Source: Bugula neritina (lineage: Eukaryota; Animalia; Bryozoa). From it: DNA of 18,367 nt. Positions 573 through 18,367 of this stretch are shown piece after piece. The notes under the pieces are model-generated. The model was not told the DNA's origin, did no database searches, and saw only the letters and a program-made list of their open reading frames with translations. Numbering within the stretch: the first letter of the stretch is position 1; every line of letters begins with the position of its first letter. The position numbers and the translations under genes were made by a program. The stretch is from contig CAXIUT010000168.1 in assembly GCA_964035545.1 (NCBI GenBank), positions 1 to 18,367 of the forward strand, given 5' to 3'.

Positions 573-3096
573 ATGTAAATGTAATAGCAAACATAGCAAG
601 GATAACGTTTCCTCAATGAACTAGCGTAGATATTTAATTATTTAGAATCATCAGTTAGTAGATAAAAAACCATTCAGGGTTTGAAGCAATTGAACTATTC
701 AATAAATTTATCAATCTCTATATCAACCAACAAAAATATTCTGAAGACTTCTTCATGTACCCATCTTCATAACAAGGACTCTTTGTTAACATAATATCCT
801 TCCAAGACTATTCAATCTCAATCTCAAAAACCCTAATACTATACATATTCTTTAAACTTTCAATCTCTTACTGTTCAACTCATCAAAAATGAATCACCTT
901 GTCTTCATCTTCTCTCAATCAGCTTTCCATGAATTCTTCTTCTAAAAAATAAGAACTAAAAAAGAAAATTGTGAGACAGTGTAGTACTACATCCAAATGA
1001 TAAAATCAATATTAATGAAAATATCAGGTAAGAATAACCTTTCTCTGATAAAACTCTTCTTCAACTCTCGCTTCCCAGACTTCCCCCTTCTCAGTACAGT
1101 CGCTACCCTTGCAGTAGATTACTAACAAGAGGAACTAGTAAGAGTAACGGCTAATCAATGCGTATTACTCATCATTCAATTGTTAAACAAATTAAAATTA
1201 GGAGTATAATATCTCTCAGAAATGCAAATGGTTGTCTACTACCACGAACTAACTTCGAATTTATTTATCAATCAAAGTAAAGATTAACAGTGCTAAGGTG
1301 TCAAGTTTATTATTGATTTAATTCTTTCACTTAAAGATAACGCAGTCAGTAAATCAATTCTGATGAACCTTTTAACTAATCACCTCCTTTTCAGCTATGC
1401 TGGTGAGTTACATAAAATGATCTCTTTTGTCTCCCTCCTCTTTCGCTAAATGAGTTAACATCACCTGTTTCCAAGTTAATTCAAATAATAAATAGTTCTT
1501 ATCCTTTTCAGAATTATATCTAAATACCACCTAGCTCCCTCTTTCAACTACACCTATCACTCAGCACAAAAAGTTCTTATCAAACTATCTCCCCCAGAAA
1601 AACCATCTCTGAATAAATTTTATAAAGAACGTTGCAAAAAAATAGAATAGTATCTCATACAAGACACTCTCATTCTCGAAGACTACAAATAATACTAATT
1701 CGTTTATGAAGAATACATTCACTTTAACACCAGAACATACTAATCATTACCCATAAGAAACTATAAAACAAATCCTAGAAGTGCTTTTGAATAATTTTTC
1801 ACAAGCAAAGAAGAAATGGTTCATTAGTATGTCAAATCAGTGATGGTACTAGCAGGTCTAGCCCCCTAAAAATACAGATAGCCCATCCATAAGCTATCAT
1901 ATAGTGCTAATTATCAAACAGCTCTCTATTTAATGGAATATGTTAGTTATAAGTTCAGTAATAGATTCTAAAAAAATAAATATGGACATGATAAATTCAT
2001 GAGAGATGAAATTTGGTAGATAAAAATTAATTAAAATTTGCTTGTTTAAATCTATTCTGTTTGCAATAAAATATTCAAACAGAGAAAACCTATTTTTACT
2101 AGTTAGAAAAAAATATCTACTTAAGGAAAAATATTAAAATAATCTAGAATTTTCAAATAATCAAAAAATTATAAATTATTAGCCAAAAGTTCATCGAAAT
2201 AATCCCAATAATCAGAAGATAATGGTATTTTATTAGGTTTTAAACATTTTGTTAAATAATTAAAACCTATTCTAACTTCCAAATTTTGTTAAGTTTTATC
2301 AAGTCACACAGGTAAGCCAGAAATAAATTAATTAGTTTTAATATCTTCTATTAGTTCTCAAATCAAATCTAAAAAATATATCACAGAGTAACAACTACAA
2401 AGTCTTTTGAATAAGTTAAAAAATATACAAATCTGTATTACTTAAGATATTTTCAGTTAATAAAACTTTCATTTTGTCTTCAAATATCTTAATAAAGGAA
2501 AATAAAAAACAATTCTTAGAAAAATATAAAAAGGAAGTGAGAATGAATCACCTTTATCTCCAAAAAAGAAGTTTCATCAAATCAAATCGAGAATTTAAGG
2601 CAACTTTATACAATATTAAGTTATCAAAAAACTTATTGATAGTTCTGTGCAAAGTTTAGCATAATTTATGAAAGATTTTTGGTTCAATAGATTTTATTCC
2701 CAAAAAGATTAAGCCCAATTTCCTGTCACACAATTTCTTTACAAAGATTCTAATGGTTCGTTACTTGAAGTTATAGCAGATACAAACTTCGATTTTTCTC
2801 TTAAAAAAAGTAAACATAATCATGATACTGTATTTTATTCGATAACTCGAGATGACTGTAATTATGATTAAAAAAACCCTACTTATCTTTCATTTGATAG
2901 CAATACATTCTTAATTGATTTAGAAACATTAGAAAAGGCTTCAAATTTTAGAGAAGATTTGAAAAAATTAAGAAAAGAAAGAACTGAACTCATAATGAAT
3001 GGAATTTTGGAGTATCTAACTTTTAGCTTCTAAAGTCTTGTTATCATAAGTAAAATTAAAGTTAGCAATAATCAGGAAATAATGACTCCGCAATGA
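573..3096 (+). CDS. FPL-domain protein, CLEC16A/TT9/GOP-1-like (~827 aa)
   Basis: Exons 573-625, 646-756 and 777-3096, with two 20-nt introns needed for frame. Contains FFMTLCEHNIL...ETVEYYIQMIKSILMK...LFFNSRFPDFPLLST...ELVRVTA, matching the FPL domain pattern. The last exon has ~770 codons free of TGA. Confidence 0.8.
626..645 (+). other. 20-nt spliceosomal intron
   Basis: gtagatatttaattatttag; removal joins ATG 573 to the next exon frame. Confidence 0.75.
757..776 (+). other. 20-nt spliceosomal intron
   Basis: gtacccatcttcataacaag; removal restores the FPL-domain frame (FFM/TLCEHN). Confidence 0.8.
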
Positions 3097-3147
3097 TACA
3101 TTCATAAGTTTAGATAACTTATTTATAAAAATTAATAACCAAATAAA

Positions 3148-4479
3148 TCAAGAGTGATAGGGACTAAATAATAATGAAGATTTTGGAATACAATTTTTAT
3201 GTCCAACTTTTTTCTTCGCATTCTCTTTTTTTGAATTATTTTCAATTACAATATCAAGCTACTAGCTTTTTTATAAAAAAATATGTAAATTTTTAACTGC
3301 TTGTTCATCCAATTTGCTTTCTTCATCCTTTTTGCCCTTCTTCCAACAACCTTTGTATGATAACTTTTCACTTCCTTTCTTAACAATATAAAATTAACCA
3401 TATCCTTATCTGAAATCATCTCGAAACTATCCCTTATATATTTGCTTTCCTTTCCAATAGTAGATTCCTAATCCCTATTTCTTGTCTAATCTATAGTTTC
3501 CCTTAAAACTTTCATTTTAATCCTCCCAAATTCCATAACCGTGCCTTACTCCCTGCTTAAAATCTCCTCTGTAGACACTACCATCAGCCCAAAAGTATTA
3601 TCCATATCCCTATGCCATACTATTGACATATTATCCTAAATATAAAAAATTATACCTACATATCTATCTTTATTTCCAAATTTTTACTATCCGAATCCGA
3701 ATTTAAGTCCATTTACAAACTGTCCCTAGTACCGATCTTTACTCACATGAATACCTGAACCATGAGGTAGTCCTGCATGCCAATTACCTACATATATTTA
3801 GTTATTAGTAAACCAATAAAAAGCTCCAGGACCATGCTTAAGTCCTTCTTTGAAAGTTCCAATATAAGTATTGCCATTAGCCTGCAGTTAATATCCCTTG
3901 CCGCAGCGACTACCATTATGATAGATTCCTTAGAACACATTACCATTATTCAGAAGTGATACTGACTGTCCATTAAATGTACTTTACTGCTCTTCCATGT
4001 CAATATACTTAGAAGCATCTTTCTATTTGTACTATTAAACCAGATGAATACCATTTTAATCCTAGACTAGAGATGCTACAAACTCACCATCTTCATTTTT
4101 TAAACGTTATTAATCAAATTTGAAAGTCTACATGTTACAGAAAGGATAATTTTCTAAGATCTATTCAGATGTATAATTTTTATTCCTGCATTTCTTTAAA
4201 TAAAGTAACTTTTCCTGACCCTTAATTCTTACTTCTTATGATATCACTGTCTTCTCTTAATGAACTTCTAATTCAATATGATTTTAACTCTTCTATTTTT
4301 TTAGAGAAGGAGGTGATATTTTTACTCCTTGCTTACCTATATATATCTTAAACTACCTAGATAAAAGACTCTTTACCTACTTGAACAGCATTTTTCTTTG
4401 TTTTCTTTGTTGACGATAGAAACAACTCATTAGGATCATTTTTCATAGGAGAAAATTCGAAAGAGCTGTCGTTCTACAT
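3148..4479 (-). CDS. MORN-repeat protein (~420 aa)
   Basis: About 9 MORN units, e.g. FEGIYHNGSRCGKG, YIGTFKEGLKHGPG, YEGQFVNGLKFGFG, YRGDFKQGVRHGYG, YKGEFRDDFREGYG. 20-nt intron at 3636-3655; TGA at 3150-3148. The 5' structure is uncertain: ATG 4479 plus splicing around 4337-4376, or an unspliced start at ATG 4439. Confidence 0.9.
3636..3655 (-). other. 20-nt spliceosomal intron
   Basis: gtataattttttatatttag; removal restores a MORN repeat (YVGEYVNSMAEGYG). Confidence 0.92.
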
Positions 4480-4527
4480 ATTATTATTGCACTACAATTA
4501 TTATTAATTCGTTTAAAATTATAGAAA
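4480..4527. promoter_or_regulatory. Putative bidirectional promoter (48 nt between divergent ATGs)
   Basis: AT-rich spacer between the minus-strand ATG at 4479 and the plus-strand ATG at 4528. Confidence 0.5.
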
Positions 4528-5589
4528 ATGATTCCATCAATACAAGAACAACAGGAGTCTGGATTCTTTTCCAAAAGTCCTAACAGTCACCACCAAGACG
4601 AAGACTCTCTTTCAATAATGAATAAAATAGCTAATTTTATCGACTCAAGACAAATTTCTATTTTCGATTTCTGGAAATCTAATCGCAATTGGGCTTCTGC
4701 TACAGATATTGCAGGTTTTTGTAAAATTTGTGGTCTAAACTTGCCTGAATATGATGTAGTTAATCTCAAAAGTTAAATCTTCAATCAGAAGTAAACTGTT
4801 TATGTTGACCAATTTGCATATCATATTCCATTCTGGTAGTCCCAATAAAAAGATACAGTGGCTGAATTTCTTAAACAAAGATCAGATCTACTTTTAACAA
4901 AACTACAAACTAAATAAAAGAAAAGACCTCAAAGTGGATTTCCTGTCAATAGATTATCTTCTGAATTCAAAAGACCATTCACAGGAAAAGATTCAGGAAA
5001 CCAGATCAGATTAGAATCCGCAGGAAAATCTAGACATAACTCAAGTGGAACTATTAAAAAGTCGTAAACAAGATCAATTTTAAACAAAAATAATTCAAGA
5101 GATTATCTGAAAAGATATAAAGATAAAGAATTAAATAGATAAAAATAACTACACGACAACATTGAAAAAAATAAAATTGATGAAGAGTATGCTATGCTTC
5201 TTAAAATGAGTGAACTCAATACTATCAATAAAGAAAGAGGAAATAATACTACATATAGAGCATATAAAAGTGCTTAAGGTGTTATTAAAGTAAGAGTATT
5301 CAATCTTAACAAATTTGAAAAAGAAATCTCTTTGAATGAGTTTGATACTGTCTTCAAAAATTTCAAAAAAACCAGTAATTAGAATAAAGATTGGACTATA
5401 GTACCTCAAACTCAACAACAAAAGCTAACAGATTAGCTTCAAACTCTAAAAAATAGAAATGTTCAAAAATCTGAAAGACAGCAAGAACTCAAAAACTTAT
5501 TAGTAGGAACAGTGAATCTGACTAATCTTCTCAAAGAACAAATCAAAATCTTTAAAGAGAAAGGTATTTTAGGTTGTTAAAATCTATGA
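4528..5589 (+). CDS. Hypothetical protein (353 aa)
   Basis: Uninterrupted ORF with TAR=Glu: MIPSIQEQQESGFF...KRPQSG...EQIKIFKEKGILGCENL-TGA. It extends the supplied 82-aa ORF. Confidence 0.85.
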
Positions 5590-5629
5590 TATTCATCTTC
5601 TATATTGTTTAAGATTAGTAAATATTTAA

Positions 5630-6163
5630 TCATCTATAATACCTTTCCTTCATTGCAATCATCACTCGATGAGCTGTATCCAACTAGTAATCAAGTCTTA
5701 AATTCTCTCTAGAAGATAACTATTGCATCATCTATTATTGACGAAATGCCTCTTCAGCTTATCTTTGTCTTGCATATAAAGCCATATTTGCTTGATGCTC
5801 TTCTCTAATAGTTTGTTCCTGGATTAAAGCATGTCGACGATTCATTATTTCTGTTTATTACAATGCCTTCTGATTTTCTTTTCGCAGCTGAAAAGCTGAT
5901 TATAAACGAGAACGATTCATACTGCTTTCGGCTTTAGCTCTTACTGCTGATAACTCAGCTGATAGTCTTGATCTTTAAAGAAAAGCTGATGTTTATTGAT
6001 CTTCGATCTTTCTTGATTGTCTTGAAATAGATTTTTTATCATAAGAAGTAAACTGAGAATTCTCAAGAACACTTTTTTCGTGTAGTTCAGCTGATATTTT
6101 CTTCTTTTAAAGATCAGACTCTTCTTAGAGATTGCGAATATGACTTTGATAATAATAGGACAT
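5630..6163 (-). CDS. Charged alpha-helical / coiled-coil protein (177 aa)
   Basis: MSYYYQSHIRNLEEESDLEKKK...ERSRLSAELSAVRAKAESSMNRSRLESAF...MKERYYR-TGA; no introns needed. Confidence 0.85.
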
Positions 6164-6237
6164 TAAAAATAAATTATATTTGATAAAGTTATATAATTAT
6201 TATATAGTTAAAAATTTTTTCTTATTTATCTAAACAA

Positions 6238-7002
6238 TCAGATGAGATTACTTTAATTCTCTTCTTTTTTCTTTTTATTCTTTCTTTTTTTCTTATTTTT
6301 AAAATCATTTAGCCCATTTTTAGCTATCTTTGAAAATATTTCTTAGAACTAGCTGACTTCTCTTTTTGATTTTTCATATTTCTAAGCTTGTTTGTAGTTT
6401 GACCAGTAAATCTTAAAAGATTACTAAATATCTTTTTATTTCAAAGCTTCAGTCATAGTTTCAATAGTTTTTTATAGCTAAATAAATCTTTTCCTTTGAT
6501 ATTTATTGGTCTCTACTAACTTTTCTTTTTTAGAAAGTAACTACTTGATTCTTATTTCCCACTTTGTTTTGATTTTATCAAATAAAGATAGTTATTTTAC
6601 CATAACTAACATTTTAGGGAAAACTCCCATATTTTTATTTCTATAAATCTTGTTTATTTCTTCTCTTAAAAAGCCTAATCGTTGTATATTTTTTGTAACC
6701 TCTATAAATGTCTACCTAAAGCATTTTCATACCTTTCTAAACTAAGACAAACCTGTCTTAAAAATAGTATTAGAGGCTCTCTTATCCTCTAACTCCTATC
6801 TCGAACTTTCTCGCATCGAGATATGATTTGATTATTATATTTATGATTCAACTAGAGGTAGAAATTAATCGATGATTAACTGTCTAGGTGATTATTATCT
6901 AGGCAGTTCTTGAAAAGATTCAACTAGAAAAGGTACATCTAGCTAGTCAGCCTGAAACTAATTGATAGCAGGACTATCAAAGATATCATCGAGATCGTCC
7001 AT
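6238..7002 (-). CDS. Hypothetical protein, acidic N-terminus and basic C-terminal tail (~247 aa)
   Basis: MDDLDDIFDSPAINEF...KNKKKRKNKKKKEENESNLI-TGA. A 21-nt intron at 6712-6732 contains an in-frame TGA. Confidence 0.8.
6712..6732 (-). other. 21-nt intron with in-frame TGA
   Basis: gtatgaaaatgctttaggtag; removal deletes the only stop in the ORF. Confidence 0.8.
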
Positions 7003-7067
7003 TTTATTTGAATAAGTAAGATATTTTAATAATAAGTAGAGTAGCAATAAAATTAAAAATCATCATT

Positions 7068-7586
7068 TCAAACTGAATTATATTGAGAACTATATTTACC
7101 TTTCTTATTTTTCATCTTCAAAACATATTAATTAAGTACTATCTTAACTTAATTTAGTATTTATTATCGATGTTTTGATTGGTAAACTTCTTATGTTATA
7201 TCTTTGAATATCTATCTTTCACTTCCTGAAATACCTGATGATCTCAATGATTGTTCCGGTTAATATTCATAAGGACAAATATTTTCTTTATCATCCTCTC
7301 TGGAACTAATATGACTATCATGATCAAAAGTTGAAAAAGAGAGGAAACTTATCTGTTAGTGAGGAGATCTTAAAGGCTAACCTTTGTTATTCTCAAATTA
7401 TTTTATTTATCGTAGCTCTTGATCTTTAAAGTTTCTTTGTAGATGTTTGAAATGTTAATTTTCATTACTTTCTATACTCTCTTCGTACATATTCTCTTTA
7501 TTTTTGATACAATTCAAATAAGAGTTAGGTCTACTCTTGATATTACTAGTTTCTTTTGATTATGTAGTTCTGTATTGGTGTTGCAT
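7068..7586 (-). CDS. Hypothetical protein (~172 aa) with a KEN-box-like DKENICP motif
   Basis: MQHQYRTTESKETSNIKSRPNSY...DDKENICPYE...REIFKDITEE...NSV-TGA. Confidence 0.7.
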
Positions 7587-7689
7587 CGATAGATTTTGTT
7601 TTATATTATGCGCATATTATTCAGTTAAAACAATTTCAGTTATGATATATCATAATTGATCAGAATAACGGACAAAAATACAATAATAA

Positions 7690-8673
7690 TCACATACGGT
7701 TCGTGTTAAACCGGACCCTGCTTCCAAAATAAAGCTATCTTGGTGGTTATTAGTGTTTTTAATGAGGAATTTCAATCAGAAAGCTGTTTTTATTTCTCCA
7801 ACTCTCTTTTACAGAATGGTTATCAAAATATAACTTAGAACCTTGTGAATCAATTATCTTTTGTCCTCTATTCATATTTTTTTATTCTGCAAGTTTGTAT
7901 TGAAATTTGAGCGTTTAATTTTATTTTTCCAACTCTTCTATTCTTTTTTATAATCTATTAATCTTTTACTAATAGTATTTCTTCTCCTACTTCAATACTT
8001 TTTACTTTTTATTCAAAGTTTATTCGAAAGCTCTTTGAATTTTATCAATATCCTCACTATTCCTATTTTTAATTTATAAAACCTTCTTGTATTTCATCTC
8101 CAAACATTCATTCTATGACTTCAACTCATTAACTTTATCATGAAAATATCTAATTGCATCTTCTGATAGTTTACTTAGCTTATCCTTTTTCTTCTACATA
8201 TAATTCTGCGGCTATTATGTTGATCTAGAATATCCTGATTCAGAAATTAAGTATTTATTATGAGAAGGATTCATAATTCTGGATCGTCGTTATAAACTAG
8301 TATCTTATTTGATTTGAATATACTCTTCTTTAGATTCTCTAACACGTTGATGATCATGTTGAGAAAAAGATCGCTTATTTGAATTATTAAGTTTGTAAAA
8401 CGAAAGTTATGATTCTAATTTTTCTACTTTTTACTTCAGTTAATCATTTTCACTCAGAAGAAAAGGTATCTTCTTTATTAGTTTATTTGCCTCTTCATGG
8501 GGAACTTATTATACCTTTATTCCTTATTGATGTTTCCCTCTCGAATTATTCACTTTTGGAGAGCATGTAGTTAATTGAGGATCAAACTCTTAGACTGATC
8601 CTCTCGAGTCATAGACAATATTTGAAGATTGTTCGAGTGTCTTTCTAAGTTTAGATAAAATATTTTTGCTCAT
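7690..8673 (-). CDS. Coiled-coil protein (327 aa)
   Basis: MSKNILSKLRKTLEQSS...LLSENDELKEKVEKLESELS...KINRLEKRIEELEKENETLK...RFNTNRM-TGA; uninterrupted. Confidence 0.85.
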
Positions 8674-8716
8674 GTATGAATAAAAATTATTTAAAATATT
8701 AAACACAATTACAACA

Positions 8717-9742
8717 TCATTTCAGTTGATAATTAAATTTCTTCACCTCTTTAATCTATCCAGATCCAACTGTATACTTATCATAGTTAAAAATAGTAGA
8801 ACGATTACTTTATCTCTGATAACTAAACTTACTCATACTTTTCGAAGGCTGAATATGATCATAATTTCTTAATTAAATATTTTGGTTTAATTTTTGAGGT
8901 GCTTGAACAGGTATCGCTTGATAACTTTTGTATCTATTAACTTTAAAAGTTTGAAAAGATTAGTTTTCTTTACTTTTAGCAAATCTGACTGGTTTTCTTT
9001 CCTAATAACTTCTTTAAAATATTCTATTTTCTTATTTCAAAGGAATTAGATCATTACATTATCTTCTTTTATCAATGATTTCAGGATTTTTATTAGCAGA
9101 TATCTTCATAATTGGCTATTTTTCTAGAATTGGATTGTTTATATTCTGATTAAGTTTGTATTGATTATAACTCAACTGCAATTCATCATGTTTTCTGATA
9201 AACTACTAACATTTTCTATCCAAAGCTTGATATTTTTGTCTAATTATTTAATCTGAATTTTCTTTATTATCTAAAGTATCTTCAATAGGACTTTTCTTTA
9301 TTTTTAATTAAATTTTATCAAAAACAGATGACTTAAAACTTCCATTTACTTGCTTTGTTGATTATTAAAAATTTCTATCCTTATTTCTTTAACTAAGAGC
9401 TATTGGATTACGATTACTTTCTTGTAAAATATTAAAAGGAGTATCATTCATAACTTTATCATTTTAATCAGATTCAATACCTACAATATAAATCTTACTT
9501 TATTCTAAGAGTTAACTGATCTTCTACTTGATTGTTTTCGATAGATTTTAAGTTACTAAGATTAATTTGAACTGTTCTTCAAGACGATTCTTAACCCTAT
9601 CTTTAGATATAGATCTCCAAGTTACTGTTTGAGATAATTTATTAAGTAAATCATCCAAATTATCTTCTTAATGCACTCGAAGTTTCACTACTTGTTTGTC
9701 TATTTTCAAATTTATTGTAAAAACAGAGTGATTGCGACTCAT
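8717..9742 (-). CDS. Hypothetical protein (~340 aa)
   Basis: MSRNHSVFTINLKIDKQVVKLRVHEEDNLDDLLNKL...KFNYQLK-TGA. Possible in-frame 18-nt intron at 9481-9498. Confidence 0.8.
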
Positions 9743-9874
9743 TTTACAAGTAAAATTATTAAAAATCAACCGTATTAAAAAGAATTAATCAATGAAAAAT
9801 CAAAATTATCTTTTATGAAGAATTTAAATATTAAGAAAAGGTTTATGGTAGTTTAATAATATATCTTTTTAAAA
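9743..9874. promoter_or_regulatory. Putative bidirectional promoter (132 nt)
   Basis: AT-rich spacer between divergent ATGs at 9742 (-) and 9875 (+, LCMT1). Confidence 0.45.
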
Positions 9875-10942
9875 ATGCAGGAATAATACGATCTAAAAGT
9901 CGAAGACACCAATTAATAAGCACTTTCTTCTAAACTGTATATATTTCTCATTAAGCTCTGCCATAAAGTTAGGCTATATGGTGGACAACTATGCTGAATA
10001 GTTTACAAATTATCGAGGAAAAAGGGATATCATTATCCATCGAGGATATTGGGCAAGAGTACATATTGTTCGTAGACTCATCTAAAAAATGATTATTCAT
10101 GGTATTACATCTTCTAATGTAGGACAAAATGTTCAAATTATATCTTTAGGTAGTGGCCTTGATACCACCTGGTTCAATCTTATGGATTAAGGATTTAAAG
10201 ATAAACAATTTAAATATATTGAGCTTGACCTAGATATTGTGGTTCAAAGAAAAGTTCGAAAGATAAAGAAGTCTAAAAAACTAGGTCAACTCTTCTAAAA
10301 ACTCAATCTTACTCAAACCATTTCATGTATTTAAAAATATATCTTAGAGAACTAACAAATCTTTAAACTTGGTGATAAGTATTCCTTAGCTTCCTGCGAT
10401 ATCTCTAATTTACAACAATTTCAGTAGATTATTGAACACCATAAAATCGATCCTTCTCTGCCAACTCTGTTTGTCTGTGAATGTGTTCTCAGTTATATCA
10501 ATGCTGATCGAGTTGATGATTTAATAGCTTACATTAAAAAGCAATTCAATATGGCTTTCATTTTCGATTACTAGATGTATAACCCAAGCGATCGTTTTGG
10601 ACAAATGATGGTCAAGAACTTTAATCAACGAGGTTGCCCTTTAGTTGGAATCAATAAATATCCTTTATTCGCAAATCAACATGAAAGATACCAGAATGCT
10701 GGATGGCAAAGAACTTAAGTCTACACAATGAAGGATGTGTAAATTATCATTAATCTAGATATTATGAATGCATCGATAAGAATGAACGAATGAAAATATA
10801 AAAGATTTAAATGTTAGATTAATTCGAGGAATGGAATCTTATCATGGCTCACTACTTTGGATTACTAAGTGTAACATACAATGAAGAAGGATAAAAACAT
10901 CCAAGTTTTAAGTAACTTATGTAAAATGTCAAATTAAAGTGA
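9875..10942 (+). CDS. LCMT1: Leucine carboxyl methyltransferase 1 (PP2A methyltransferase, PPM1 family)
   Basis: Family motifs VEDTNEEALSSKLSAIKLGY, IIHRGYWARV, QIISLGSGLDTTWF, YIELD, PTLFVCECVLSYI, YEMYNPSDRFGQMMVKNF, RGCPL, IEKIEMLDEFEEWNLIMAHY. Frame-required introns at 9937-9955 (19 nt) and 10739-10758 (20 nt); probable in-frame introns at 10102-10122 and 10327-10347 (21 nt each). Confidence 0.95.
9937..9955 (+). other. 19-nt spliceosomal intron
   Basis: gtatatatttctcattaag; removal restores the LCMT1 SKLSAIKLGY motif. Confidence 0.92.
10739..10758 (+). other. 20-nt spliceosomal intron
   Basis: gtaaattatcattaatctag; removal restores LCMT1 MKDVYYECID..ER. Confidence 0.9.
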
Positions 10943-11010
10943 TATTAAACAGTCAACTTCATCTTAAACCCTATAAATATACACTATATGATAATATAAT
11001 TTAAATTTAG

Positions 11011-11220
11011 ATGAATAACTTGCCTGGTTTAGGAGGAATCCGCTAAAACGAACAACAAGAAATCAGAGATGCTCTGGAGCAAGCATTCCAAATCAGCAAC
11101 TATCTTAAGTGCGGTGTAGATAAGAGTACTCTTGCCATTATGATCAATTTGGTGTAAAATGGAGCTAAACCTGAACATATTGCTATGATAGTATCTTAGA
11201 TAAAAAGAGCTCCACAATGA
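11011..11220 (+). CDS. MZT1: MOZART1 / gamma-tubulin ring complex-associated microprotein (69 aa)
   Basis: MNNLPGLGGIRENEQQEIRDALEQAFQISNYLKCGVDKSTLAIMINLVENGAKPEHIAMIVSEIKRAPQ matches the MOZART1 pattern (IS..L..GLD..TL..C..L.E.G..PE.L..V..EL). Confidence 0.9.
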
Positions 11221-11302
11221 ATGATAGTTGATAATTTTTATCTAAATAATTTGGATAGATTTATCTGTCTTTATTGAATTTATAATTGAAATTATTGATA
11301 AA

Positions 11303-13692
11303 ATGCACGATAGAGATCATGCAAGTATTGATTAGTCAATTAAAGTTAATAGCTGGGGATCTTAGTCTCCAAATAACATACAACCCAACCATAACTTCTT
11401 TAATAAATACCCTTTACAGAAAGAACAAGAAAATGGATCAACAAAGTTCCACTAAGCTGAACACTTTAGCCATGAACCACAGTCAGTAAATAACATAGAT
11501 TTCGCTTTTAAAAGAATCAAAAATGAGCAAATCTAAAAATTAAACGATCTTAAAAATGAATACTAATAAATTCGTAAAATAACTACATAATATGCCAGAC
11601 CTCGTGTTAGTGTTAGCTCTTCTATGCAATCAAGTAATGTTCGTTCGAGTCAACCCAGTCAAGGACAAGATAATAGGTTTAAAGTTAATAGTGTTTCAGG
11701 AGTAGGTAGGGAAAATCAAATCTTGTAATTGGAGAAGAAACAACTTTAAATCATGCTTTAAAATAGTATGAAAAAAATTGAATAATTACTCCATAACTAA
11801 ATGCAGTACAAAAAAACTATCCATTAACTAAGATTATAGAAATAGAGTAAAAGTTTTGGATAAAGTGATAATCATTCTTTAAGCAGAGTTGCAAAAAAGA
11901 AATAAAAATAATTTGGAGATCAAATTAAGAGTCTTTAATTATAACGAGAAAATTTGCTTTCAAATGTAAGTAGTCTCAGAGATAAAGTAAAATATTTAGA
12001 AAGTAAGTTAGGAAATTCAGAACAATAACTCAGGAAAATGATTGAAGAAAAAAGAAATTATGAAGAACTAATTCGAATGTAAAAAGATAAACTTATGAAT
12101 TTATAAATTTAATTTAGAAGAGATAAAAGATAATTCGAAATTATGGAAAGAGATAAAAATTTATAAATCAATCAACTACTCAAACTTAAAGATATAAAAT
12201 AATCTTAGAACTAAAGATAGCTTCGTTTGCAGGTTAATTCAATGCAAGAAGAACTAAATATCAAATAAAAAAGATATCTTCTCCTTTTACAACAACTACA
12301 AAATGTTCAACAAGAAAAAAATAAATAAGACAAAGATCAAGAAGTTCAACTGATGAACTAAATTCTCAATAAAAATCAAAGTGTAGAACAACCGAATAAG
12401 GCATTTCAATAAACTATAAATGGTCTTCTTCTAAGACTCACAGATCTAGAATCTAAACCAAATCATCAATTAATTCCTACTGATATTTTTCCTAGTATTG
12501 AAAGAAACGATTATTAAAGTTAGTATCTAAAAGAACATATCAACAATCTTTAAAAAGTATTATAAATATTATTTAGAGAATAATCGGTTATTAACAAAAA
12601 ATTACAGCATTAATTCACTCTAATACAAACCTTACTTCTTAAATAAAAACTCTAAAAACAGAAAATGATAGTATAGCCAGGAAAAATAGAACTTTACATG
12701 ATACATAAATTACTTTGAGAGAGAAACTTGAAAAATCAAGATCTAATGAAAGAAGAATATCAAAAAGTGATTCAAGATAGAAGATATCTTCTATGATAGT
12801 TCCTGTAAAAGATGATAATCCTTCTAAATTATAATTTATGATAAAAAAGATCAATAACTTGTAAGGTTAAATTCAAATACTAAACAAAAAATTGATTGAA
12901 TAACAGAAATAAAGATCTAAAATAGAAGATTAGAATCGATCTCTTTTGAATAAGATGAATATAGTATAATTTTAAAGATTTAAATCAAAACAAGAGTGTG
13001 ATTTACAATTGAATATGATGAAAAAAACACATTAAACCAATATGAATGTAGCAAAATAAGATTTAATGTCTTAAAAAGCTCAAAATAATAAAACTAAATT
13101 TGAATTAAATGAACTAAAAAAAACATTTTATGGACATAGATAATCTCATAATCAATAAATTGCTCAACTAAAACATAAAATCGATACCTTAAAAAGATAA
13201 AAATATTCTTTTGATGCCGATTCAAAAGCTGTCTATAGTAATAATTTATAAAGAATAAAAGAGGACTATATAGATCAAATATAAAAACTAACTTCTTCTG
13301 TTAAAACTCTTAATATCTAAAATAAAAATCTTCAATAAAAATGTAATAGAGCACAACTAATATTCACTTAAAATTAAGAACTAAAAGATTCGTTAAAATG
13401 GGCTAGATTATAAAATAGATAAGAAATGAGCAGAACACTTAGAAACAACGATCCCAACAGAAACATGAATATAGCAGGTTCTATAGTCCAGGGATTCATG
13501 GGAAACAAAGAAGATAATTTAAATAGAACTCCTAGAAATAATGATAAAAATAAAAATAGAAATATAAATACTAACAATGGTATGGATAGAGATATAGCAG
13601 GTTCAATAGCTCAAGTCTTTGATTCAACTAATAAGAAAAATTAATCAGAATAAAATATAATGGGAAACTTTTTTCAACACTTCAAAAGTTGA
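11303..13692 (+). CDS. Long coiled-coil protein (~789 aa)
   Basis: Exons 11303-12556 and 12577-13692 (20-nt intron). E/K/L-rich heptads; the C-terminus has two imperfect RT.RNND...IAGSI.Q.F repeats. Confidence 0.85.
12557..12576 (+). other. 20-nt spliceosomal intron
   Basis: gtattataaatattatttag; joins two long open frames. Confidence 0.88.
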
Positions 13693-13821
13693 ATCATGAT
13701 TTATAACCATATCAATACATTATTACTGACTTTATCATTCTATCAGTTTATCTTTGACAAATTATTACAAGTCTATGAATATATTAATTAATTTGAGAAG
13801 AGAATATTAGAAGTGACTGAG

Positions 13822-14612
13822 ATGAGTCACTTTCATAATCATATGTTTAAACTCATCAAAAGCCTCTTCGGATACTCAGCCCCACGCAGAACCTAAAGCG
13901 AAGAAGCCAAATCCAAAAACAAGCTCTGCTCAGATCTTGATCTATAACAAAGGAGGGTAGTTTCCATTGACAGCAAAAACAAAATACTTACAGCCAAAAA
14001 AAGAACTCAATCTCCAGAAACCCTCTATGAACTTGATTAAGTAGGAACCATCAAAAATAACTTCATTTCTTCTCGCTTTATCAACTCTCCTGATGAAAAA
14101 ATTAACCTTGATCTTGTCTCAGATCTTGGAGAGAATAAATCATCAGATGACTATGATTTGCTGACAGATATTCCAGAACACTATCCTCTCAATTATTCAG
14201 TCAATATTCCACAATCTGAACACTAATTCAGGTAATTAAATCTTATTTCAGAGATGATGTCTTTACTTTTGCTCCATAAAAGCCTTCTCCAAAAAATGAA
14301 GAAGAAGTTGAACTGTCAAAGAAGAAAATAAAAGATGGAAAGCCAGAATTCAGAAAGATACTTCCTAAAAGAAATCAGATCAAAAAAAGATTCAATGCTA
14401 AGTTGAGATGTCCATTTTGCTCAGAACCACTCTAACTCTAAAATTCTTTGAAATTGGCTTGTTCTCATTGTTTTCATTCAGCTTGTGCTTTGAAAATGAG
14501 AGAAAGAAACTTGTTTGAGTGCGATTTATGCGAGATAAAGAGGAAGAACTTATGTTCAATTATCACAATGGATAGGAAAAGAGGAAGAGGATATTCTCCG
14601 ATCAATAAATGA
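13822..14612 (+). CDS. RING-H2 zinc-finger protein, putative E3 ubiquitin ligase (~250 aa)
   Basis: C-terminal CPFC-x11-C-S-H-CF-H-SA-C-x11-CDLC (C3H2C3). 20-nt intron at 14232-14251. The start may be 13822 or 13843. Confidence 0.85.
14232..14251 (+). other. 20-nt spliceosomal intron
   Basis: gtaattaaatcttatttcag; joins the N-terminal exon to the RING-encoding frame. Confidence 0.88.
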
Positions 14613-14661
14613 TTGCCACCAAATTGAATAATTAAATATTAAATAGAATTGAGATGATTAA

Positions 14662-15672
14662 TCAGTTTTTAATGGGTTAAATGTTTTTAATATTTTTGTT
14701 AATTTATCTCTTATTGGTGTACATTAAGAAAAGAGGATACTAGGATTAACCCATGGCTTCTTAAGCTTATGTTTTTGATAGAGTTTCTTACTTGTTTGGA
14801 GGAGGCGGAATTAATTCATCATTTTTTGGAGCTTTATTTTGATTCAGTATTTCATTTGTTGGCAAAGAAGTATTTTATTCTTTTTATATATTTTTTTCCT
14901 TGATGATAGAGCCTTATTACTTATTTATAGATTAATTTATATGAGTTTAAGTAACTGTTTTTTAACCTGGTTATTTGACTACAATAGATATTGATTAAGT
15001 AGATTCTTTAATTGATATATTTTTTGATTAAGTTTGTGTTAAGGTCAATCTTAGCATAACTTATTTACTTTTTCTTTCAAAAGTCTAAGATTTGTTTAAC
15101 TATTTATTCTCATAAAATTAATATTTATTTTAAGAATTTTCTTTTACATAGAAACAATTTTTTTCTTTATCTTGTCGATTAGAAATACCGAACCTTGAGA
15201 TGAAATCGATAAAACTTGATTTAATATTTTATAATTAAGATACTTTCAACTTTGGTGAATAGTTTTATGGTAGTTGTAATTGATATAGAATTGGTTTTAA
15301 TTCTGGATAGAAACTTCTTCCTTAATAAGTTTCATTGACTTATGATTCTCCTTTTTTCTTAATTTCAGGATTATCAACAACTTTAGTTGATTAAATATTT
15401 TCCTTATTAGATCTAATCTAATCTAGTTGAGAAAAATTTGATATAATATCCATCTGTATTACTGATTACATAAGATTTCTCTTGTTAGGTGGAACTATTA
15501 AAGAGTCAACTTGATGGACATTAATAACGATCTTTTATTCTTCTGGAATCGCATTAATTTTCTAAATCTAATGTTGAGAAACAACAATAGTTGATGACTT
15601 CTTTATTTACAGAGATTCCTTGGTTCTTGCTTATGTTTCTTTCAACTATTTTCTTGCTTGACAAGTCCCCAT
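14662..15672 (-). CDS. Low-complexity protein with N-terminal MGTC acylation motif (336 aa)
   Basis: MGTCQARKELKETEARTKES...ELIPPPPNKEE...IEPIKN-TGA; uninterrupted. Confidence 0.8.
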
Positions 15673-15915
15673 ATATTTAAAAATTTTAATAAAATATCTA
15701 TCAAACAAAAATTTTCTCTCATTTATTGATAAATTAATACTTAATAAAAATTCTAGGAGAACAATTTTGTAATAAATAACCTATCTCTAACTCAATTTTA
15801 TTTATTTCTTTCAAAAATTATTCAATTTATTTCATTTTGATATTTTATAGGATAAAAATTATTCTTTATTTTCTATAAAAGTCATATTATTATTATCAAT
15901 AAGTAAACATTATCT

Positions 15916-16956: not shown

Positions 16957-18275
16957 TCAATGAATGCTTTTATCTAACTATCTCTTCCTTCTTGCTTCAA
17001 TTATTTCTTCTTTCATCTTTTTCAAATTGAATACTTTAAGTTTTTATTCTTATCCTTTATTAATAATTATTTATTTCCTTTTTTACACTTTTATCTTATC
17101 TTTAATTTCAGGTTATAATTATATAATAACCTTCTCAAGAATATTTAAAGTATCCAGAATTTATTCTACTTTCATCTGATGCTTATCTCTTCTTAATTAT
17201 TATTATTTTTCTTTGTTTTTCATGAATTATTACTTCTCTTTTTCAAAAAGATTCGATATAATAAAATATGCTTATTTAAGATAGTTCTCATTTTTTGTTT
17301 AAATTATTATTTTTATATTCTTTTTAATTTCCTCTAAAATTTTATAATAAAAATCACTAATTTGATAAATACTAGTCAGAATTTTTATACATTCAGCCAA
17401 ATGTTGCATTGATCTATCAAGATAATTAAGCTAGCTTTGTATTTTCGATAAAACAAAATGAATTTCCACTAAAGCATTTTTCGATCTTTAATCATTCGAA
17501 GTTTGATAGATAGAAAGAGATGAACCAAGTAAACTAGCTGCTTCACTCATATTTTTATCATATTAAAAAGCTACGATTCCCAGTTTATGATATATTCTTG
17601 GGGTTGGGGTTGGGGTTGGGGTTGGGGTTGGGGTTGGGGTTGGGGTTGGGGTTGGGGTTGGGGTTGGGTCTTCTTTGTACTCTTGATTAAAATGATGTAG
17701 AAATGCTTTATTTTACATTGAATAACACTGATTAACTTTTAGATCAAAAAGATAACTATCAAAATCTTGACCATAAAGATTTACATTTTATCTTCGATAA
17801 ATTGCTTCTTTCAAAAGATTAGCTCTACTTTAAGAAGATTATTTAAAGAAAATATTGGCTTATAAAGGTTTATCTAATTTTAATTTTAACTTAGCTAATT
17901 GATCAGTTATATGATAAAAATCAAATTTATCATAGTTTTATAAACGAAAACTTACTTATCTTGCCTTAGAGAGAGCAGTAATAGCAAGTGAATATTTTTA
18001 TGTTTATGAATAAATACAAGCTAACACTTTATAATATCTTACAGCTTCTTATTTTTTTTATTTCTTATTATTTGTAATTAACTTCCAAACCTACTGACTC
18101 TATTTAAAGGCTGTCTATGTATCTCTAACTTTGAGAAGTAACTAAGCAGTTCGTAATTTGATTTAGATGTTTAGCAAATTTTTTGGACTAATAAGTTATG
18201 AGTTAATTTAATATGTTTTATAGTAGATATGAAGGGCAGATTGATATTGAAATTGCTATTTGAGGATAAAAGCTA
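16957..18275 (-). CDS. TPR-repeat protein, 5'-truncated by the telomere and interrupted in frame by a telomeric tract
   Basis: One TGA-free frame from the right telomere to TGA at 16959-16957, with no upstream start. TPR-like helices: LAFILKEQFQYQSALHIYYKTYEI, YYKVLACIYSETEKYSLAITALSKAREV, IYHKLGIVAFEYDKNMSEAASLLGSSLSIY, IHFVLSKIQSELNYLDRSMQHLAECIKI. Confidence 0.8.
17598..17668 (+). repeat. Internal telomeric tract, ~12 x TTGGGG
   Basis: 71 nt of T2G4 in the same orientation as the right telomere and about 600 nt inside it, flanked by coding sequence on both sides. Confidence 0.97.
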
Positions 18276-18367
18276 GGGGTTGGGGGTTGGGGTTGGGGTT
18301 GGGGTTGGGGTTGGGGTTGGGGTTGGGGTTGGGTTGGGTTGGGGTTGGGGTTGGGGTTGGGGTTGGG
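18276..18367 (+). repeat. Right telomere, (TTGGGG)n
   Basis: Tandem T2G4 hexamers to the window end, with a few G3/G5 variants. Confidence 0.98.

Follow-up and report, generated by a model that had tools for sequence, protein, structure and literature searches.

In-frame TAA and TAG as glutamate codons on a telomere-capped ciliate macronuclear chromosome

The chromosome and its genes

The window, by which we mean the whole stretch of DNA analysed here (18,367 bp, G+C about 26%), carries (CCCCAA)n at its left end and (GGGGTT)n at its right, and is therefore a complete, telomere-capped macronuclear chromosome of a ciliate with Tetrahymena-type repeats. The telomeres and the four genes on which most of this work draws are as follows.

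1–94: left telomere, (CCCCAA)n, a Tetrahymena-type C4A2 repeat that is read directly
745–3096, plus strand: FPL-domain (CLEC16A-like) gene, a TGA-bounded frame recognised by a Pfam FPL piece and by alignment to the related locus L012
3102–4442, minus strand: MORN-repeat gene, recognised by its translation, by alignment to the related loci L012 and L013 and by a faint MORN match on the orthologue
9875–10942, plus strand: LCMT1 gene of five exons with the stop codon TGA at 10940–10942, recognised by gene model, profile, PDB and Pfam
11011–11220, plus strand: MZT1 gene of 69 codons, with ATG at 11011, TAA at 11044 and 11155, TAG at 11197 and the stop codon TGA at 11218–11220
18277–18367: right telomere, (GGGGTT)n

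An internal G4T2 tract at 17598–17668, 700 bp from the right end, is probably an alternative chromosome end.

In its six frames the window has no open reading frame of at least 100 aa under the standard code versus 86 TGA-bounded ones, a contrast that by itself carries little weight, as AT-rich DNA contains few TGA triplets; the code was therefore examined by homology. An earlier note on this DNA had described its genes as full of in-frame TAA and TAG (together TAR) and as ending in TGA. This description is accurate for LCMT1, with 18 TAR codons, and for MZT1, with three, both of which end in TGA, and every codon singled out in the note (TAG 10572 and 11197; TAA 787, 853, 10799, 10808, 10820 and 11155) is indeed in frame.

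The MZT1 gene was identified through a stop-free piece that matches Pfam MOZART1 with 27.3 bits (cut-off 27), and all six of its PDB matches are MZT1. Its orthologue in the related locus L006 is 72% identical and carries TAR at the same two positions, together with a TAG opposite a GAA of the window. Ungapped extension of the PDB alignment places TAG 11197 on Glu66 of human MZT1, the first letter of ELRKATE (66–72), in agreement with the human glutamate proposed for this codon in the note. TAA 11155 presumably corresponds to a Glu of the human protein as well.

The FPL gene is less readily recognised by its domain: Pfam FPL matches the piece 985–1122 only, with 22.5 bits, which is below the cut-off of 26.1. 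No candidates came from a word search for which the query was a 46-aa piece of FPL, and the orthologue was reached by walking along the contig of a relative. In the resulting 768-codon alignment to L012, both TAA 787 and TAA 853 stand opposite Glu. In the MORN gene, TAR occupies the Y-x-G and G-x-F/W positions of the repeats, at which the orthologue has E or TAR.

LCMT1 and its introns

Contigs of four public runs were placed on window positions 9800–15799. Contigs of one run, X4, lack exactly four segments of 19–21 nt in the LCMT1 gene and retain its TAA and TAG codons. These contigs are apparently spliced; the records do not list X4 as an RNA run. The gene model derived for LCMT1 is the following.

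9875–9936, 9956–10101, 10123–10326, 10348–10738 and 10759–10939, plus strand: LCMT1 exons
9937–9955, plus strand: intron 1, 19 nt, GTA..AG, absent from the X4 contig
10102–10122, plus strand: intron 2, 21 nt, GTA..AG, in frame if retained, absent from the X4 contig (10101/10102, with an ambiguity of 1 nt)
10327–10347, plus strand: intron 3, 21 nt, GTA..AG, containing TAA 10332, absent from the X4 contig
10739–10758, plus strand: intron 4, 20 nt, GTA..AG, absent from the X4 contig

The spliced gene encodes a protein of 328 aa with 14 TAA and four TAG codons in frame. Introns 2 and 3, at 21 nt each, keep the frame if unspliced, and in-frame introns of this length are readily misread as coding sequence with extra "TAA codons". 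TAA 10332 is such a case: it lies inside intron 3 and so is not a codon. Removal of the same intron builds a TAG codon across the junction (T|AG, from 10326 and 10348–10349), opposite which the related locus L002 has Glu.

TAA and TAG in distant LCMT1 homologues

Related loci were found with a 48-aa piece of LCMT1 as the query, and an exact look-up of a 47-aa piece matched no record. An exhaustive protein search with an 82-aa stop-free stretch of a relative (L002:216–461) produced 66 full-length LCMT1 proteins from across the eukaryotes, which were used as a profile. The spliced LCMT1 of the window matches this profile end to end (338 bits, E = 2e-105), and Pfam LCM recognises a stop-free piece of it with 23.4 bits (cut-off 22.3). 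In the matches to human LCMT1 in PDB, the pieces that flank TAG 10572 end at residue 228 and start at residue 230. Individual TAR positions are listed below.

9914–9919, plus strand: two successive TAA codons, each on an acidic column, with Asp in 41/61 and 52/61 homologues, respectively, and Glu in 3/61 at either column
10572–10574, plus strand: TAG aligned with Glu in 59/66 homologues, with GAR (Glu) in L002, L003 and P0001 and TAG in L001
10799–10822, plus strand: TAA 10799, 10808 and 10820 on columns that are Glu in 31/66, 62/65 and 62/66 homologues, respectively

The columns of TAG 10572, TAA 10808 and TAA 10820 are thus 89–95% Glu, and the claim that TAG 10572 and the three TAA codons at 10799, 10808 and 10820 occupy Glu positions of LCMT1 is borne out; the TAR sites of the gene that are not listed above fall on variable columns. 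Base 10822 differs between samples of the same species, with G in runs X2 and X3, which turns TAA into TAG on the column with Glu in 62/66 homologues.

A score in the manner of Codetta was obtained by summing the profile log-odds of each amino acid over the TAR sites of LCMT1. For the window alone, it is highest for E (10.5 nats), followed by D (6.1), then Q (3.7) and lastly K (2.0). Over the LCMT1 genes of six related ciliates, the score of E at the 37 TAA sites is 24.2, compared with 9.4 for Q, 9.1 for D and 5.3 for K, and at the TAG sites, which are fewer (16), it is 11.2, compared with 3.9 for D, 2.2 for Q and 1.1 for K; these sums are somewhat overstated because orthologous sites of related species are not independent, but the ranking with Glu first stays clear.

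Codon partners in a syntenic relative

The related loci represent no fewer than five ciliates, whose G+C is 24–41%, and every locus has genes rich in in-frame TAR. One comparison employed a 75-kb ENA contig with 37% G+C (ERZ22295043 NODE_259, comprising L006 and L012), on which at least 12 genes stand in the same order as in the window (window 745–14609). We aligned the window with this contig over 3595 codons of 12 genes and recorded which codon of the relative stands opposite each TAA and TAG.

The 180 TAA codons of the window are paired with Glu (64), TAA (33), TAG (13), Asp (12), Gln (8) and Lys (7), among others. Glu accordingly makes up 48% of the sense partners (64/134), versus 7% expected (p = 1e-37). 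The 56 TAG codons are paired with Glu in 11 cases, with TAA in nine and with TAG in nine, and the Glu share of their sense partners is 29% (11/38, p = 4e-5). Neither codon has an excess of Gln, Lys or Tyr among its partners. GAA of the relative is about as frequent opposite TAA of the window (31) as opposite GAA of the window (30); its CAA, CAG, AAA and AAG stand opposite TAA in 0–5% of cases. The combined usage of TAR and GAR is about equal in the two species, at 11.9% of codons in one and 10.9% in the other, and the TAR share tracks AT content. As the total is stable while the share of TAR follows AT content, TAR behaves as synonymous with GAR. Both TAA and TAG are glutamate codons in these genes, as the earlier note had claimed, and the profile log-odds and the codon partners in orthologues agree on this point.

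This contig also differs from the window in its organisation. A gene block that lies on a 75-kb contig in the relative forms an 18-kb telomere-capped chromosome here, and because of this difference either chromosome fragmentation varies among relatives or the contig of the relative is germline or otherwise differently processed. Another syntenic contig of a relative is L013 (JGI 3300008085, 46 kb). In L003, the orthologue of the gene at 5633–6304 is found about 400 bp from LCMT1 (L003 6317–6700, compared with window 6305–9874); the window and L006 have three extra minus-strand genes (about 3.5 kb) between these two. A 4.4-kb contig, L010 (GCA_050043615.1, JBNHEI010034116.1), holds a fragment of the LCMT1 of a relative in the same code. 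Within 11225–13692 the window has two long TGA-bounded frames that overlap at 12502–12718, and their L006 orthologues (10877–12253 and 12111–13097) overlap too; the two frames are probably the parts of a single long gene for a coiled-coil protein, with a short intron between them.

Genetic code and source organism

From these comparisons, and from the position of TGA codons described below, we consider it nearly certain that the window is ciliate macronuclear DNA that uses NCBI translation table 30, in which UAA and UAG specify Glu and UGA is the terminator. Table 30 is the peritrich nuclear code, known from Campanella umbellaria, Carchesium polypinum and other Sessilida. The window shares with it the Glu meaning of both codons, UGA as the terminator and the setting in an AT-rich ciliate macronuclear genome, and the code of the window does not differ from it in any respect.

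In line with this code, the source is most likely a sessilid peritrich, an assignment that is favoured by the code itself, the G4T2 telomeres, the introns of about 20 nt and the grouping of LCMT1 with oligohymenophorean ciliates. The nearest named LCMT1 homologues are those of Ichthyophthirius and Paramecium, followed by unrelated eukaryotes, and a quick maximum-likelihood tree of LCMT1 unites the window, Ichthyophthirius, Paramecium and one unnamed protein in a clade with an SH-aLRT support of 99. These features are compatible with an oligohymenophorean, a peritrich being the favoured candidate.

An organism with the same code that is not a peritrich, either another oligohymenophorean or a member of some other ciliate lineage in which the code arose independently, appears unlikely. 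The LCMT1 clade consists of Ichthyophthirius, Paramecium and the unnamed protein only, there being no named peritrich homologue among the LCMT1 search matches, and an independent origin would not be out of place in Oligohymenophorea, which already has three code variants, one of them recent (PMC10553269). Against this, UAR=Glu among ciliates has been reported for peritrichs only, with a single inferred origin (PMC10553269; PMC10089648); introns in three sequenced peritrich genomes are very short and narrowly distributed in length (PMC13685798), as seen here; and the clade, which is diverse, is often met with in environmental assemblies, as would be expected of sessilids. We likewise give little credence to the wider proposition that this genome and the environmental clade around it (L001–L003, L006, L009 and about 20 protein fragments) lie outside the peritrichs, in which case UAR=Glu with UGA stop would have arisen twice independently in ciliates.

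Termination at TGA

Genes of the window terminate at TGA. For five genes, the orthologous alignment reaches within 0–8 codons of TGA in both species, and the TGA of the gene that ends at 5587 is aligned with the TGA of the relative (5587 and 3292). A six-frame BLAST search with all stops written as X gave mostly off-frame noise, and only the true-frame HSPs were used. No internal TGA was found in the true-frame orthologous alignments of the window, an absence that is partly by construction since the open reading frames had been cut at TGA.

Codes in which UGA is context-dependent exist in Condylostoma and karyorelicts, and it is conceivable that UAR means Glu here while UGA is also a sense codon, for example for Trp, in some genes. 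We regard this as very improbable, considering the lack of internal TGA in the true-frame alignments of the window and the termination of genes at TGA directly past conserved C-termini in both species. The alignments lend support to UGA as the sole stop within this window, in agreement with the earlier note, and TGA follows conserved C-termini in the window and its relatives alike.

A public gene call on L006 (82–294, minus strand) crosses an internal TGA, so the caller apparently took TGA as sense. Public gene calls on the contigs of relatives are unreliable in both directions.

Other codes

Table 6, the ordinary ciliate code, in which TAA and TAG both specify Gln, is used by Tetrahymena, Paramecium and Oxytricha. 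As in the window, the two UAR codons have changed meaning jointly and translation stops at UGA only, and Tetrahymena also has G4T2 telomeres; the difference is in the amino acid, Gln in table 6 versus Glu here. This is the commonest reassignment in ciliates and the inferred ancestral state of Oligohymenophorea (PMC10553269). The earlier note had added a weak counter-site in its favour, TAA 853, at a position where FPL domains usually have Gln. That reservation can be dropped, as the orthologue has Glu at this site. Moreover, Gln accounts for 8/134 sense partners of TAA (6%) and 4/38 of TAG, which is not above the 4.8% expected, and in the profile log-odds Q trails E by 15 nats at TAA sites and by 9 nats at TAG sites. 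CAA and CAG of the relative stand opposite TAA of the window in just 5% of cases. For practical purposes the Gln code is refuted, and its remaining probability is negligible.

The same is true of a split code like that of Oligohymenophorea sp. PL0344, with UAA for Lys and UAG for Glu. PL0344 belongs to the same class as the window, judging from the nearest named homologues, and has UAG=Glu and UGA as stop in common with it, but it differs in the meaning of UAA (Lys, as opposed to Glu here) and in its median intron of 57 bp, as opposed to about 20 nt (PMC10553269). Lys is found in just 7/134 sense partners of TAA (5%), versus 10% expected; the TAA log-odds are 5.3 for K and 24.2 for E; AAA and AAG of the relative are opposite TAA of the window in 2% and 0% of cases, respectively; and TAA and TAG interchange freely. 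TAA sites of LCMT1 stand on columns with Glu in 62/65 and 62/66 homologues, by which the split code is refuted, leaving it a vanishingly small chance. Table 30 was thus correctly preferred in the note over both the Gln code and the split Lys/Glu code, since neither Gln nor Lys is enriched and both have lower log-odds.

Table 29, the Mesodinium code with UAR=Tyr, was rejected with Tyr in 3/134 partners of TAA and 2/38 of TAG; like table 6 and the PL0344 code, it fails both the profile and the codon-partner tests. The conservation of 3595 codons across several species, together with the spliced contigs, rules out pseudogenes and assembly errors.

Outside the ciliates, UAR=Glu is shared with the nonstop code of Blastocrithidia, a trypanosomatid in which UGA means Trp and UAA doubles as a stop, whereas the window is ciliate DNA with UGA as terminator (PMC12153298).

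By analogy with known reassigned-stop biology, UAA and UAG would be decoded by tRNAs derived from tRNA-Glu with UUA and CUA anticodons, and eRF1 would no longer recognise UAR and be restricted to UGA. In the eRF1 of Carchesium, the GTS loop has a deletion and its Thr is missing (PMC10089648). ARAGORN detected tRNA genes neither in the window nor in the nine related loci that were scanned, and Rfam detected no RNA family in the window; rRNA and eRF1 genes are likewise absent from the window and these nine loci.

Implications

The code described here is already known and not new, as the peritrich nuclear code has been catalogued as NCBI table 30. In practical terms, standard gene callers fragment every gene of this chromosome and of the related metagenome contigs, and public protein collections carry these genes as pieces of 50–200 aa only. 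Translation with table 30, taking introns of about 20 nt into account, is required before other findings on this genome are judged. Only a placement of the organism outside Peritrichia would make the occurrence of this code scientifically new.
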